Part shown: in pieces, positions 19,727 to 27,084 of the stretch
How positions within the stretch are numbered: position 1 is the stretch's first letter
Layout of the letters: each line of letters starts with the position of its first letter
Assembly: GCF_003918875.1 (NCBI RefSeq)
Contig: NW_025766059.1
Location: 310,001-374,000, forward strand
Source: Haliotis rubra
Taxonomy: Eukaryota
Length of the DNA: 64,000 nt
Direction of reading: 5' to 3'
Notes under the pieces: model-generated
Database searches by the model: none
The model's input: only the letters and a program-made list of their open reading frames with translations
Told to the model about the DNA's origin: nothing
Translations under genes and position numbers: made by a program

Positions 19727-20728
19727 TAAATGTTAATCACAAATAGAACAAATGTAAGCGTTGCAACTGGTGATGAGTCTGTGGGGGTTTCCCTGGAGGA
19801 AACTGGTATGCATGCATTGGTCAATAATTCAATATTTCATACACTTTGGTTAGTTTTGTATATGTTATGAGAGTGTGTTTTTTCTTGTAATTTGTAATAT
19901 CACATTGATTAAGACTTAGTGGTAGTTATTATGGGTCACAATGTTTAAAGTTTTGAGTGTGGGTTTTGGTTCGCATCTCACATCATATATGTTCAGTGGC
20001 ATTAGTATTTGTAACGGCACGCCCTTTTTATAGCGCTTCAGAGTTGCCTCCCTTGGGGCAATCTCTTTGTATTTGTTTTGGCTTCCTTCCATGTGTTTAC
20101 GATGGCTTTCGTGAACGTTCCGAGAGAATAAATGATGGAGCCCAGCTTTGCTAGAGTGCTCGAGAACTGTGTAACAGTTATATAAAGGCCAGTTGTTGTG
20201 TTGTGCGACGGGACATGACTGGTTATGACTGGATTTATACACATTTGTCTGCCATCGTCAAGCTGACCAATATTTCAAGACTGACCGTGCTCGTCTATAT
20301 TCAACTGCTGTCATTGTAAACAACCTTCAATCAGTATATCTGTGCTCACTGTGAATGTCAAGAATCTGGTGAGTTAATATCTTATATTTTCGACCCAATA
20401 TTTTGGATTTGTGACTCAACTGCATTGTACTAGAAATCTGTATTGTCATTCATGGTAGCTTGCTCATTCTTTGTTGAATATATTATTGAATATTTTAGAC
20501 TTGTCTGGGTTCTACTTTGCTGGTTCAAAGGGGATTCTTAAACCTTTTGTCACGGCAAATTATTAACCGTAACAAAATTTGGGGCTCGTCCCGGATAGAA
20601 TTCATTTGACATTTGAGACCTATAGAGGGCTTCGGGCTTTTCTACATTTCCCACAATGCATTCCCGGCGGCCATTTTGGAAGGCTTTGTTTACGCAGCTC
20701 ATTGTTGTTGATCATTCATCCAGAGATA

Positions 20729-23700
20729 ATGCCGACTACGTGTGCTATTGTTAACTGCAAATGTCGGGGTGGGAGAGATAAAAAGAGCTTTTATCGCATT
20801 CCTAAAGTTATTTCTGGACAGGGGGAAGCAGCGGAGAAGAAGATTGAACGGCGAAGGAGAGCATGGATTGCTGCAATCAACCGATCCGATGTGACGTGTT
20901 ACGAACAGCTTCGTGTTTGTTCGGATCATTTCATTTCAGGTAAGCTATATAATTAACATTTTGTAGGTACATACGAATCTAAAATCTTCACAATTCAAAG
21001 CCCCATTTCATATTGAATTGATGTGCTAGGTCTAGGTCGAGGTCGAGGGTCAGTCTTGGTAGTAGGAAGCCATGAACACTAAATGTTCATAGGGTATGCA
21101 GTATCTCATGTAAAGTTGATATTAGTACGAAAGTATTTATTATGAATTCAGTGTCTATTGTTGTTTTATCAGAAAAATAGTAACATATTTGTTATGGTTT
21201 ATTTAAACTTAAGTACAAAAGAAACGCTACAAACAAAAAAATTATAAAATATGAATTACTAAAAAAAAAGTTTTAGTTTCCAGGTACAGGAACTATATCA
21301 CCCGAACACATCTTAGGTGTTTACAAACAAAAATTGGAACAGAATCCTTGCTTTGTACACTTCCAAACAAAAACATGAAATGCACGTTTTTAGTCATTAA
21401 AATACAATTTTCGTTCGACTGGGGTATAAATTCGATGCAGAAGGCAAGCACAGCATCATTCCAAACTCAAAACGGCACCATAAGAATGCCGAGATTGACA
21501 GCAGCAGCAGAGAAAGAGCATTGAGAATGTTGGGAGATGGTCGCCACTCACGACCACGTCGCCAAACCCTCGGCTGTCACCCGCGTAACAGTGTCCAGAC
21601 TCGTCCAGCGATATCGACAGACTGGCCAGACTACTGATAGACCCAGAACTGGCCGACCCAGGGTTACAACACCACGCGAGGACCGGTACCCGCGCACATT
21701 GCACTTATGCATAACCGTTTCCCTGACGGTGACGCGCTAATCCTCATCGGCAGCCGGCGTTGGCGTTAGGTCGTCGTGTCAGTCGACACACAGTGACCAG
21801 GGCGGCTTAGAGCTTTTGGCATCAGGGCTTACAGACCGTTCCGGGGACAGGGGGCTGACCCAGGCACATCGACAGAGACGACTGGAGTGGAGATTTTGCA
21901 ACCTCCGGCGAAGTACGACGATGGCAGGAACGTCAATGGCAGCGAGTGCTCTTTAGCTGACGGATAGAGCAGATTTCTCTTGTACCGAAACGATGGCAGG
22001 GCACGGGTTTATCGTCGTACTGGAGAACGACAGGCCGCCTCGTTGCGTTCAGGAGGTCGTTCTCTATGGAATGGGAAGTGTGATGGTGTGGGGAGGCATT
22101 TGTGGAGAACAAAAGACGCCACTGGTCATCGTCAATGGCAACCTGACGGCCAGACGGTATATCGATGACATTCTTAAGCCCACAGTACTGCCATTTTATG
22201 CGCAATCGCCAACAGGGCATCCTGCTTCAGCATGACAATGCAAGACCCCATGTGGCAAGAATTACACAGAACTTCCTTCAAGCAAACAACGTTAATGTTC
22301 TTCCGTGGCCAGCATGCTCCCCTGACATGTCACCAATCGAGCACTTGTGGGACGCTCTTGATCGCCGCACCGTGTTAGGCTCCGTCAACATCCCCAACAA
22401 ACCGCCAAGAACTCGCTGACACCCTCGAAGAAGAATGGCGGAACATTCCACCTGCTGACGTCAGACGACTGACGTCATCAATGCGTAGAAGGGTCTATGC
22501 ATGTCTTGAGGCGCGAGGAGGCCATACTCGCTACTAGAGTTCACCATAGTCATTGCTATAGACTTTTCTTTAGCAGAAGTTTATGTGTAAAAAAATGAAA
22601 ATGAAATTGCTGAAGTGTCGTTAAAAGAATCCTCTGTAACACTGGTACCATATCGTTATTTATAATTGTTGACAATCATCAAAAAACTTTTTATGTCAGT
22701 CGTCTCAATAAACTTTATTGCATGTTTCTAGTGTTTGTGGTTTCTTCACAGGGTAATTTTGAAAAGTTGGTAGCGTTTCTTTTGTACTTGAGTTTAGTAT
22801 CCTGTTTCAAAGCACAATGTGGAAACAGTATAAATTGATATTGAATCATGAGTTAACTTGTCTTCTTTTACAGACAGATGAACTGTAAGTAATGACATTG
22901 TGTAATGAATAATTCATATATTTTCAGGAAAACCACATCAATATGATGAATCACATCCAGACTTGGCTCCTAGCAAGCATCTAGGCTATGAAGGGACAAA
23001 GTCACCAAGTAAAGCAGCTGTACGCCATGAAAGACTGCAAAACAGAAAGGAAGCTGCTAAGAAAACAGAAGCTGCTCTTAGTTTACTTGAACTTAGTGCA
23101 TACATGGAAAATGAATCTGACAGAGATTTGGCTGAGCCCACCCCTGAGTCACCTACTGTTGAAGAGGAACCAACCGTCACAGAGAAGCTGGAGCTAGCTA
23201 ATCAAGAAATAAGTGAATTAAAACAGGAAAATAAGCAGCTGAGAGAACAAAACGAGTGTTTAAAGAACATTGTACACAAAATGAAGGCCAATTCACCAGA
23301 GGACTTTGAAGATGACAATGAAAAGGTGAAGTATTATACTGGATTGCCAAGTTATGGCACTTAATCATCTTTTGGCCCCTGAAATGACAGAAAACAGAAA
23401 TTCATCTCTCAGCAAATTTCAGAAGATAATCATAACCCTAATGAGACTTAGACTAAATTTGCCCGTCAAAGACTTGAGTTATCGTTTTGGTGTATCTAAA
23501 TCTACATTATCCAAGGCTTTCTTAGATATTTTGAACTTAATGTATGTGGCATTACAACCTTTAGTGCGTTGGCCTGATCGTGATGAACTTAGGGAAACAA
23601 TGCCGATGGTGTTTCGTAAATACTTTGGAAGGAGAGTCACCTGCATTATCGACTTCTTTGAGATTTTCACTGATCGACCATCCAACATGACTGCAAGGGC

Positions 23701-24174
23701 ACAGACCTGGTCCAACTACAAGCACCACAACACAGCAAAGTATTTGATAGGAATTACTCCTCAGGGAAGTGTAAGCTTCATATCGGAGGGCTGGGGAGGA
23801 CGAGTAAGTGACAAACATCTAACAACCAATTGCAAATATCTAGACAATCTAATGAATGGAGATTTGATACCAGCAGATCAGGGATTTGACGTCCAGGAAG
23901 TGGTTGGCGCCGAAGTGAAACTTCCATCTTTTATGAGAGGAAAGCAACAGCTGAGTGCTACAGAAGTTGAGTCAACAAGAAAAATTGCTATGTGAGGATT
24001 CATGTGGAAAGGGTCATTGGAACTGTGCGTCAGAAGTTCATGATTCTTGGAGCGACGAGTCCGATTGATTACCTCATTTCGAAAGCTGGTGACAAGTGTG
24101 CAATTCTTGATAAAATTGTGTTTGTATGCTGTGCTCTTACCAACATGTGCCCCTCTGTTGTGCCATTTGACTGA
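20729..24174 (+). pseudogene. THAP + HTH + DDE_Tnp_4 transposase; exons 20729-20939 and 22928-24174, two frameshifts
   Basis: MPTTCAIVNC...RRRAWIAAINR...RVCSDHFISG|GKP..PDLAPS (THAP, phase-1 GT-AG intron); [44 protein letters not shown]. Confidence 0.9.
21206..22794 (+). mobile_element. Tc1/mariner transposon inserted in the ISL2EU transposase intron
   Basis: TIR aacttaagtacaaaagaaacgctac / gtagcgtttcttttgtacttgagtt with TA TSD; decayed transposase 21486-22536 (QHDNARPH, WPACSPDMSPIEHLW). Confidence 0.92.
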
Positions 24175-24360
24175 CATTAACAGCTATCAACATGTGTCCT
24201 GTTGTGCCATTTCTCAAACATTAACATTCACATATTAAATTTCCTTTAACTTTTACCTTGAGTTATTATGAGTTACTATTCATTGGCTACTGGTATGTTA
24301 AGCCATTAAAAAAATGAAGAAAAAACAAAAAACCAAAACAAAACAAAAAAAAAGATAAAA

Positions 24361-24455
24361 AACATGTCTGCAGTTTATCCATTCTGTGTTAGGTTTAATC
24401 ACAGTATTGGATAACCCAAGCTGCACTGATGAGCCCTGGGAGGGCGAAACATGTT
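24361..24455 (+). ncRNA. Type III hammerhead ribozyme (predicted cleavage after GUC, C24368)
   Basis: AACAU-GUC^UGCAGU...GCUGCA-CUGAUGA-GCCC-UGGGA-GGGC-GAAAC-AUGUU: full catalytic core with stems I, II and III paired. Confidence 0.88.
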
Positions 24456-24674
24456 AAATTTTCTGATTGAATCATATGATTTTAGACTACAGAAAATCTT
24501 TTTGTGAACACATTTGTGAGAGAGACAGGTATGTTTAATATTGTAACTGTTTTCCAAAATGACGACATATTTCACATATTTAGTCAATTTGATGTTGTCT
24601 ATTTGTTGTTGTTGTGAGGACAAATAAATTGCCCAGAAAAAGAAACCTTTCTAAACAAAGTTTGAGTGCAATGC

Positions 24675-24755
24675 AAACATGTTTCGCCTTCCCAAGGCTC
24701 ATCAGTGCAGCTAGGGTTTCCCAATAAAATAACTGAGAAAACTGCAGACATGTTT
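24675..24755 (-). ncRNA. Type III hammerhead ribozyme (predicted cleavage between 24747 and 24746)
   Basis: Minus strand AAACAU-GUC^UGCAGU-UUUCUCAG...UUGGGAAA-CCCUA-GCUGCA-CUGAUGA-GCCU-UGGGA-AGGC-GAAAC-AUGUUU. Confidence 0.88.
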
Positions 24756-24849
24756 TGGGTTTTTGATGATTTTTGTGTCAGAACAAACACATTATATCAA
24801 CAGTGATCAGTGAAGTCAGGTAGGGAATGTGGATTCCAGGTATTTTCTT

Positions 24850-26806
24850 TTATTTCCTTTTTATACTCCTCAAGAAGTTACGCTCCAAGCAGTCCGGACA
24901 AAACCAATCTCCCTCAGGTTCAGCTTTCAGGTTCACACATGACAAATGAAACCACTCAAAGGGCTTGTTGGGACAGTCTTCAGAGTCACAGCCAATCATA
25001 ATACCGCCTTTTGCACCATCACAAACACAGAACAGTTCCAGGTTTTCCTCAGATGCGTCCAGTCCAGGTGAGGGTTTGGAGGACTTTGATACAGCTGCTG
25101 TCGTAGCCTTGGACTTGGATGTCTTCTCTTTTGTAGCTGGTTTTTGCTTGGTCGCCTTTCTATTTGTAGACTCTGGCTGTCTAAGGGGCTTCTTCTTCGT
25201 TGATTTCTTTCCCGCAGATGAGATTGTCTCCTCTTCACTTAATCTGTATAATTTACCAACAAGTTCCGGAAGAATGACTGTGGCAAAACATCTTGACGAT
25301 CGATCCAGTAACTTGTTCCACACTTCGCTGTTGGGCTCAATCCGTTGAAGGAAAATGTCTTTTGGAGTCCATACAACAAAATCACAGTAGTCTACATCAG
25401 CAACATGGATATGAGTCTGAACTTGGGAATAATATGCATGGGTTTCCTTCAATTTAAGTCCTGCATTGGTATTCTCAAGACAAGATCCTTTCTGAGCTCT
25501 GACATTCTCATCTCTCATGCAATATAGACACTTCACTTCAACACATCCTCTTCCACAACAGTCACATTCAACTATGCCATCTGGAGAAGCGCCGAGGTGA
25601 GGATAGTCTTTGTTGAGAAACAGTCCACAAGGTTGGGTCTTGAAATTAACATGATTTTCCAAGGAAATACCAGTGTAGTGTCTCCTTGCAACATCTTCAT
25701 GATCACAACCCCATTGCATAGCAGCATTTGTAAATCTGTGTTCATGTGGATAACAAATTTGTTTCACTAAGCTGTATGATGGTTTGTCACATGATGTCGC
25801 ACAAGCAGCTTTTATCCTTGAAGATGTTATTCGTCCTGTCCAGAACCGAAACCACAAGTTACAGTCAGCTTGTTGCCTGGTAGCTGCCTCAACATTGATG
25901 GCTTCTTCCTCTGTAAAGGCAATACTGGGAAGTAGTGTACCGCAATGTTCCACTAGTTCGTCACGAGACATTCCTTCACACTTGTCATCCCTCAGTTCAG
26001 ATAACACCTTGGGGTACTTGGCCTGAAGACTAGTTGGCACATAGTCTGCGCTATACTCTTTCTTCACTGCCAAACAAACTGGTTTGTCTTCCTTCAGTGT
26101 CTTGAAAAAAGTGTCATACCTTGCCTGGGAAATGTTCACTGATAGCTTCTTCGCTGAGGTCTCATCCCTAATTACTTCAGTGTGGGTGGAATCAATTTGT
26201 TTATCAAGTTGTTTTTTAAGTGTTTTTGCTGATGTAAAATCAATGTCACGTAGTGGAGCATACTGAACACTTGTCTTTGAAGCAGGTAACATCCAGTAGG
26301 CAGGTTTCTGAGTCACTGTACTGGCCTCTCATCCTGACTGTTGCCTCTACATAAAACAAAACTGATGCCACGTGAGAAAAACTCTCTCCCAATTCTGCCT
26401 TACAGTCACAGTGAGCTGGCGTTACCTTAGTTTGCTTATCCGTGATTATCCAGGGTGTCAAACTTGGGTCAGATAATTTCTGAGAATGCATGACTCTTGC
26501 CTTGATAACACGATGTCCACTGGGCTGATGCAGATAAACAGAAACGTCACGAACCCATCCACAAACAAACCGGTCATAGCTGTCAAGACTCGTGAAATTC
26601 TGAAAGTCTTTCAATGTGTAAAATGGGCTGGGTTGAAAAATCAAGCAATTCACCAAGTCCGGGTATGAAACTTCTGGGAAGCTGTCGTGATCTTTACTCC
26701 ACTCAGACGTGTCGATCTGGTAAGGATCTTCACCACCAATTACACATATTTTCTCCTTGTAACGGGTAAAAGCCTTCTTGTCTAATGACTCGGAATACTT
26801 CTTCAT
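24850..26806 (-). pseudogene. ISL2EU accessory protein: SWIM Zn finger, YqaJ/lambda-exonuclease-like PD-(D/E)XK domain and C-terminal PHD finger; one frameshift near 26320
   Basis: AHCDCKAELGESFSHVASVL (SWIM-like); RITSS, LGASPDG..EVKC, YYSQVQ (YqaJ); FCVC..MIGCDSEDC..EWFHLSCV..WFCPDC (ING-type PHD). Confidence 0.88.
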
Positions 26807-27084
26807 GCTACAAAATCAGGTGAACAGTTATTTTCCACTGAATACTTCGGAAATATCACGTCTGTACTGGTAAGCGCTATAATGTGAGAATGACTCTGCA
26901 ATGAAGCCTTCCAAAATGGCCGACCGTAAGGCCTTGTGGGATACTGTTGCTATTTTTAGTAAAAATGACGAAGCCCTCTATTGTGAAATTAATTTCAAAT
27001 TTCTGCAATTTTGCAATTTTGTGAAACCAGCAAAATGGTGTTTGAACTTTAGAAGTTTCTTGAATCCCCTATGCCAGAGACTGA

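Follow-up and report, generated by a model that had tools for sequence, protein, structure and literature searches.

The 64,000-nucleotide (nt) stretch of Haliotis rubra DNA analysed here (contig NW_025766059.1, positions 310,001 to 374,000; the window, with coordinates counted from its first letter) contains an ISL2EU DNA transposon with two convergent genes. Between the stop codons of these genes lie two opposed hammerhead ribozyme motifs, one on each strand. HHR-A (24360-24456, +) is read in the sense of the transposase gene, and HHR-B (24675-24755, -) is read in the sense of a gene for a YqaJ exonuclease with a C-terminal PHD finger.

ISL2EU elements have an AT target-site duplication, and autonomous members encode a THAP-HTH-DDE transposase together with a YqaJ gene (PMC4482050). 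Within the PHIS superfamily, the window element fits this description: it contains a THAP-HTH-DDE_Tnp_4 transposase, a YqaJ open reading frame (ORF) and inverted ends with the AT duplication. The left end (20622-20686, +) consists of the AT duplication at 20622-20623 and a terminal inverted repeat from 20624, which starts AGAGGGCUUCG. The right end (26904-26981, -), found by inverted-repeat search, blastn and sequence reading, consists of the inverted repeat to 26979 and the AT duplication at 26980-26981. The transposase gene comprises a THAP-domain exon (20579-20953, +; Pfam THAP, E 1.9e-8) and a part with the HTH_Tnp_4 and DDE_Tnp_4 domains (22963-24174, +; Pfam 3.6e-16 and 7.1e-32), which stops at 24172-24174. 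The YqaJ-PHD gene (24850-26806, -; Pfam YqaJ 4.7e-22, PHD 4e-4) stops at 24850-24852.

The window copy has decayed. Its transposase has two frameshifts and is matched by three tblastn pieces in different frames, compared with one piece in the copy on contig C1546, and one frameshift leaves the YqaJ-PHD gene as two overlapping ORFs. The C1546 copy is 96-97% identical to the window element and has a single YqaJ-PHD ORF of 652 amino acids and an unbroken DDE match; the blastn homology between the two ends at 26986. A nested insertion of 1.56 kb (21205-22770) separates the THAP exon from the rest of the transposase. It has its own 31-nt inverted ends, which are 94% complementary, and was found by inverted-repeat search and as a gap in the blastn match to the C2533 copy (L040/L003), from which it is missing.

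Sequence and fold of the two hammerheads

HHR-A has stem III AACAUGU/ACAUGUU, the cleavage triplet GUC with C17 at 24368, stem I UGCAGU/GCUGCA with the distal extension UUAUCCA/UGGAUAA, the core CUGAUGA, stem II GCCC/GGGC and GAAAC. The core of HHR-B is identical, with C17 at 24747, and its stem II is GCCU/AGGC and its distal stem I UUUCUCA/UGGGAAA. Both motifs contain the type III core, namely CUGANGA, GAAA, a G-C pair closing helix II and an A-U pair beside the NUH triplet. Cleavage is predicted after C24368, 194 nt past the transposase stop, and after C24747, 103 nt past the YqaJ-PHD stop. A preliminary description of this stretch had placed the cuts at 24368 (+) and 24747 (-) and the stops at 24174 and 24850, and our reading of the sequence gives the same positions. 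Its claim of one complete type III hammerhead per strand, each in the sense of the gene upstream, was confirmed by sequence reading and by alignment to the Rfam model RF00008 (Hammerhead_3).

That model had been proposed as a check on both strands. HHR-B aligned over its full length with 42.8 bits (local E 6e-8), and HHR-A reached just 16 bits because of an insertion of ~50 nt in helix I. Relatives of the two motifs score 37-45 bits. A covariance model of our own, R1, gives 107.6 bits for HHR-A and 91.6 bits for HHR-B.

Hammerheads of the extended type III kind, with a pseudoknot between loop 1 and loop 2, have been described in delta-virus-like RNAs of toad and termite and in the genomes of termites, Drosophila pseudoobscura and other flies (PMC7936874). 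Helix I of the present motifs consists of a 6-bp stem, a 5-nt bulge on the 3′ strand and a covarying distal stem of 7 bp. Helix II has 4 bp and a 5-nt loop in all copies, and is thus shorter than the 6-bp helix of the published form. The internal loop of helix I can form a pseudoknot with helix II's loop (CCCA/UGGG, three Watson-Crick pairs), and 94.4% of the cells at these positions are paired in an assessment made outside the alignment model, which contains no pseudoknot. One pseudoknot change is compensatory (C-G to G-C, giving GCCA/UGGC in a subtype described below as C-type) and five are to wobble pairs. The three-helix layout, in which helix III is open and the other two are closed, agrees with the minimum free energy (MFE) fold of HHR-A alone, which is the hammerhead (-32.2 kcal/mol, z -3.2), and with the alignment of relatives, in which 93.5% of pair cells are paired. 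Both motifs are genuine type III hammerheads of the extended kind and are probably active as ribozymes.

HHR-A is directly preceded by an A-rich tract (24308-24359, +; 78% A over the 45 nt preceding stem III), and HHR-B by a moderately A-rich stretch (24756-24790, -; 40% A in the minus-strand reading). The spacer between the motifs (24457-24674) is AT-rich, with 30% G+C, and is not conserved between families; it contains AATAAA at 24623-24628 (+) and one minus-strand ATTAAA.

Distribution and conservation of the ribozyme pair

In a whole-genome DNA search of H. rubra, the ribozymes alone, without their surrounding sequence, recur at many sites as pairs. These pairs have the same order and orientation as in the window and an unrelated spacer of ~550-640 nt, compared with 218 nt in the window, and tblastn finds each pair flanked by convergent DDE and YqaJ-PHD genes. 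The layout, A-type forward and B-type reverse, is present at at least 10 H. rubra loci, which belong to two main divergent families. The proteins of family B (contigs C2769, C1191, C400, C11, C45 and C1) share ~73% (DDE) and ~50% (YqaJ) identity with the window element. A pattern of 19 fixed bases, taken from the 3′ strand of stem I, the core and CGAAAC, was searched in the 1.38-Gb genome and in a reversed control. It matched 18 times in the genome and 0 times in the control; the matches are not due to chance. All 18 lie at PHIS-transposon loci, 16 of them between convergent ISL2EU genes, and the other two are C-type copies (C2106, C151). An independent insertion of the block was rejected, because the pattern is confined to PHIS-transposon loci and no duplication is found at the block edges. 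The view that the ribozyme block is an integral part of the ISL2EU element thus stood, since the pair occurs at the same place in other members, families and species.

The preliminary description had counted dispersed copies outside ISL2EU as evidence against that view. This does not apply to the A and B types, but it is partly touched by a further class of H. rubra hammerheads, here called D-class. These are single and unpaired, ~69 nt long, and score 58-73 bits with R1; their core is CUGACGA and their stem II GUCC/GGAC, and at least 7 copies are identical over 31 nt. They lie at C424:1459666-1459734, C1224:3494252-3494320, C2066:181554, C2335:146105 and C2397:297194/301791/375216, with further sites at C1557:3220321, C2282:1520, C502, C535, C133 and C2478. 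Among the scored hits, no DDE or YqaJ match lies beside any D-class site.

The C-type is a third, shorter subtype of 73 nt, found at C2106:1112335-1112407 (L041:9836-9908, -) and C151:148814-148886 (L043:9815-9887, +), with compensatory changes in stem III and the pseudoknot. It is in sense orientation, ~130 nt past a GTAAGT splice-donor-like site and ~800 nt upstream of another PHIS transposase's HTH/DDE exon (36-38% identity). It looks like a putative intronic hammerhead inside the transposase gene and would represent a second layout. At C400:157500-168500 (L033, L013, L012), three family B units, each with the transposase part and HHR-A, are arranged head to tail with a period of 4.64-4.66 kb; HHR-B and the YqaJ gene are present in the first unit only, making this a tandem array of partial elements. 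A third H. rubra ISL2EU family (C14, C2486, C2703 and others) gave no ribozyme match among the 150 candidates that were scored.

The ribozymes are conserved well beyond their surroundings. Their 5′ 22 and 3′ 52 bases are 82-100% identical across families and species, whereas 100-nt flanks reach 0.46-0.62 in global alignment against a shuffled baseline of ~0.4. The spacer between the ribozymes ranges from 117 to 642 nt, has 26-39% G+C and is unalignable between families. The hammerhead core is retained in 24 distinct sequences, decayed copies excepted. In these sequences 93.5% of pair cells hold standard pairs, compared with 30-45% when the partner columns are slid, seven pairs are altered on both sides, and none of 500 shuffles reaches the covariation score. 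Because this alignment was fitted to the model, it is biased toward the structure; 12 sequences aligned with MAFFT agree with it. The alignments of relatives also uphold the earlier observation that stem II covaries and that the stem I extensions differ and still pair. The stem II closing pair and distal helix I peculiar to each of the A and B types are retained in the H. rubra families, in H. cracherodii and in a pipefish, and the ribozyme pair is therefore older than the family split. These A/B differences maintain pairing within each ribozyme while weakening the pairing between the two arms. We read the covariation, together with conservation beyond the diverged flanks, as a sign of selection.

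To find the pair in other species, we searched homologues of both proteins and scanned the surrounding DNA with R1. H. cracherodii has the pair at two loci. The vent snail Gigantopelta aegis also has it at two loci, 92 and 157 nt past the DDE stop and 172 and 155 nt past the YqaJ stop. The limpet Patella caerulea has one intact B-type ribozyme, 70 nt past the YqaJ stop. The pipefish Festucalex cinctus (L050:6001-9000, GCA_051991245.1) has a near-identical intact B-type ribozyme and a 5′ stub of HHR-A (~25 bases) past a THAP-DDE gene. This gene has host genes on both sides and no YqaJ gene, and the transposase tree places it as the sister of H. rubra family A (100/98); related genes occur in Corythoichthys and Hippocampus. 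The distribution looks like horizontal transfer of the element between gastropods and syngnathid fish, possibly followed by domestication of the pipefish gene. At one H. cracherodii locus, a tRNA gene (L049:5369-5450, -; 66.7 bits) lies ~550 nt upstream of the transposase gene.

Six ISL2EU loci showed no hammerhead with R1: H. asinina (L044), a second family of H. cracherodii (L045), a second family of Patella (L046), Saccostrea (L047), H. rufescens (L052) and Corythoichthys (L053). Five of the six were also checked with Rfam or a loose regular expression and were blank. The hammerhead pair as a general ISL2EU feature was rejected on account of these loci; as a trait of one clade it stands. 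In a maximum-likelihood transposase tree, all ribozyme-bearing elements fall into one clade (support 98/99), with four ribozyme-less loci outside it and Corythoichthys inside, which would be a case of ribozyme loss. The ribozyme trait requires 2 changes on this tree, compared with 5.5 in shuffles. The rows of the tree are tblastn pieces of partly broken genes, the outgroup is C2106, and C2247 is long-branched. Together, these results support the view that the ribozyme pair is an ancestral, conserved and inherited part of one ISL2EU clade.

A metagenome scan with a strict pattern gave 0 matches, and a loose pattern matched 59 contigs, of which only L110 and L072 carry hammerheads of this class; the others are unrelated type I or short motifs. 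In L110 the related hammerhead lies ~150 nt past a DDE ORF, and its stem II resembles that of the D-class. Contigs L065, L069, L071, L075-L077, L083, L086, L091, L092, L098, L101, L104, L109 and L114, all from one metagenome study (ENA ERZ1740055/69), share a repeated type I hammerhead with a closed stem III and the same stem I 3′ strand as here, and two contigs also have distant DDE or YqaJ matches. This hammerhead looks like a retrozyme-like repeat of an animal.

Proposed role and alternative explanations

The predicted cut lies 62-208 nt past the stop of the gene that is read in the sense of the ribozyme. Over the 45 nt 5′ of stem III the A content is 51-78% for HHR-A and 38-49% for HHR-B, compared with 25-37% further upstream, and an A-rich tract also precedes the ribozyme in Patella and the pipefish. 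AATAAA and ATTAAA are absent between stop and cut in 8 of 12 ribozyme-bearing 3′ untranslated regions (UTRs), and in family B the YqaJ gene has neither hexamer within 900 nt past its stop. In an engineered reporter that lacks a poly(A) signal, an A32 tract just 5′ of a hammerhead gave a capped mRNA that could be translated (PMC2702688). None of the listed sequence runs containing this stretch is recorded as RNA, and three small runs guessed to be RNA contain almost none of it. Contigs of runs X1 and X4-X6 matched in short pieces only, two of which (X4, X5) correspond to the family B spacer beside HHR-A; this spacer would be transcribed if those runs are RNA, and the contigs do not show ends or strand.

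We then propose a model for the action of the pair. Each ribozyme would lie in the 3′ UTR of one convergent gene, in the sense of that gene. It would fold during transcription and cut the nascent RNA within the interval given above, usually directly after the A-rich tract. The released coding RNA would end in the A-rich sequence, eight ribozyme bases and a cyclic phosphate. The cut would detach it from the downstream antisense of the partner ribozyme and the partner gene, and with the antisense part severed, the two mature mRNAs of the element would not overlap. We infer that the ribozymes cleave in vivo, and that the benefit is either the non-overlapping 3′ ends, with less double-stranded RNA, or control of dosage. 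Taken as a whole, the reading that active, conserved hammerheads cut each convergent mRNA after its ORF, giving non-overlapping 3′ ends or dosage control, is the one we favour, with moderate confidence.

The preliminary description had called the pair a bidirectional ribozyme terminator. After a hammerhead cut the RNA has a 5′-OH and a structured end, on which the Xrn2/Rat1 torpedo acts poorly (PMC2702688), and the cut alone should therefore not terminate RNA polymerase II. Termination is thus doubtful and the word terminator overstated, while the severing of the RNA is retained as part of the model: the cut would sever the RNA and need not halt the polymerase.

It is tempting to speculate further that this transposon clade has swapped or backed up protein-dependent 3′-end formation with an A-rich tail and a hammerhead for each convergent gene. 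The element would then make two non-overlapping mRNAs at any landing site, independently of the poly(A) and termination signals of the host, and the extended, pseudoknotted type III hammerheads of delta-virus-like RNAs would also have a cellular reservoir in this clade. We regard this wider proposal as tentative.

Several observations weigh against cleavage in this role. The case for it is built on sequence, and the window copy is a dead element with frameshifts and a nested insertion. The A-rich tract has little length, is broken by other bases and, 5′ of HHR-B, is weak. In 7 of 8 elements HHR-A is followed by AATAAA at a distance of 65-290 nt, so the transposase mRNA may normally end past the ribozyme. 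Both HHR-A and HHR-B fall below the Rfam gathering score of 48.5, because helix I holds 29-50 extra bases; a default Rfam scan of the whole window at gathering thresholds listed no hammerhead, and the motifs appeared only with E-value reporting on a short stretch. For HHR-B alone, the MFE fold differs from the hammerhead. A read-through RNA (24340-24775) forms a near-perfect hairpin of ~95 bp between HHR-A and the antisense of HHR-B (-158.9 kcal/mol, z -12.6), which is far more stable and destroys the ribozyme fold, and cleavage must therefore win a kinetic race before the second arm is transcribed. Finally, related ISL2EU elements manage without ribozymes. The same hairpin would be strong double-stranded RNA if cleavage fails, and a possible trigger of small RNAs.

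The alternative that survives best, though we consider it improbable, is a self-limiting attenuator of the Clec2 type. Here poly(A) sites would lie in the spacer past the ribozymes, and the cut would remove the tail from a share of the mRNAs and cap the dosage of the transposase and its partner, with antisense avoidance irrelevant. The hammerhead in the 3′ UTR of rodent Clec2 reportedly lowers expression, a result credited to Martick et al. 2008. The AATAAA downstream of HHR-A, kept in spacers that are otherwise unconserved, would suit an attenuator, as would the ATTAAA hexamers that family A also has upstream of the cut. However, chance AATAAA is not rare in spacers of such low G+C content, most HHR-B spacers lack a downstream signal, and no such signal follows the family B YqaJ stop within 900 nt. 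An A-rich tract before the cut also makes little sense if the product is meant only for degradation.

It is unlikely that the ribozymes are neutral passengers, captured by the clade ancestor as foreign ribozyme sequence (the cDNA of a circular RNA of viroid-like or delta-like kind, a retrozyme or some small palindromic element) and of no service to the transposon. Hammerheads in both polarities are typical of circular RNA replicons, and the extended type III is known from delta-virus-like agents (PMC7936874). Related hammerheads elsewhere in the H. rubra genome, away from recognised DDE genes, and core mutations in many copies point the same way. Yet the examined core-mutated copies belong to decayed elements, and the spacer, variable in length and with no conserved interior, is unlike a replicon. 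A passenger would also leave unexplained why the ribozymes remain so similar next to unalignable flanks and spacer and proteins diverged to ~50%, why their helices covary, and why position and orientation relative to both stops are kept across four gastropod genera.

A selected inverted repeat with incidental cores, serving as an RNA hairpin that feeds small-RNA pathways or blocks polymerase or as a DNA cruciform for transposition, is very unlikely: the arms at 24405-24455 and 24676-24726 show 90% complementarity and the read-through RNA folds as stably as noted above, but a plain hairpin has no need of the invariant hammerhead core bases, all of which are kept, the A/B differences in the stem II closing pair and distal helix I preserve internal pairing at the cost of arm complementarity and persist across families, and Patella and the pipefish retain one intact ribozyme without a partner arm. 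Two further candidates were rejected. A retrozyme or Penelope-like element does not fit inverted ribozymes, the lack of a unit bounded by two same-polarity cuts, or the DDE transposase and inverted ends. An integrated viroid-like or delta-virus-like circular RNA would account for both polarities, but the spacer is unalignable and the flanks are transposon genes.

Comparison with known hammerheads and significance

The closest known relatives are the extended type III hammerheads (PMC7936874). They share the type III topology and the build of helix I, where a short first stem of 5-6 bp is followed by an internal loop and an additional hairpin. Their loop pairing is GCCR/YGGC, compared with CCCA/UGGG here, and the C-type has exactly GCCA/UGGC; their helix II is 6 bp long and the present one 4 bp. 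As here, the delta-virus-like agents carry a ribozyme in both polarities, but their setting is a circular RNA replicon and not a DNA transposon with two protein genes. The termite genomic copies have no recognisable ORFs nearby (PMC7936874), in contrast to the defined and conserved transposon context described here.

Penelope-like elements, Terminons and plant and animal retrozymes also inherit a hammerhead with a mobile element, and the palindromic stem III and the stem I UGCAG/CUGCA here recall Penelope-type motifs. Those retroelement hammerheads, however, are direct repeats in elements that move through RNA, where they process the transposition intermediate, and most of those in animals belong to type I or have a minimal dimeric form. 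The ISL2EU element is a cut-and-paste element, and its ribozymes are inverted and placed past the coding regions.

The rodent Clec2 hammerhead resembles the present pair in being a sense-strand hammerhead between the stop and a downstream poly(A) signal that acts in cis on its own mRNA. Clec2 is a host gene with one discontinuous ribozyme, while here there are two continuous ribozymes in convergent transposon genes, with an A-rich tract 5′ of each.

The engineered 3′ end has the same order of parts as the transposon (PMC2702688), but it is a synthetic construct; the tracts of the transposon do not reach its length, are broken by other bases (40-78% A over 45 nt) and have a putative effect.

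Up to now, the known settings of animal hammerheads have been retroelements, satellites, some introns and UTRs, and circular RNA agents; a conserved pair in a DNA transposon would be a new one. The introduction of PMC7936874 lists retroelement associations only. No paper linking hammerheads with ISL2EU, Harbinger or DNA transposases was found in the literature that could be searched, a scope outside which many subscription papers lie. The ribozyme type itself is already known; as far as we found, the DNA-transposon host, the paired convergent layout and the conserved placement after the ORFs are new.

The pair has been kept while the proteins diverged to ~50%, and it is common to gastropod lineages that split very long ago, with a further copy in a pipefish. 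The clade gives the extended type III hammerheads a genomic home, their surroundings in insect genomes having been unknown before. The combination of A-tract and ribozyme in both directions also suggests a compact natural part for expression cassettes. Together, our results suggest from sequence that the element may trim its own messenger RNAs. If this is true, the 3′ ends of its mRNAs would be defined and its convergent transcripts separated by RNA only, and the element would offer a natural model of the way in which mobile elements whose genes face each other keep from making double-stranded RNA against themselves.

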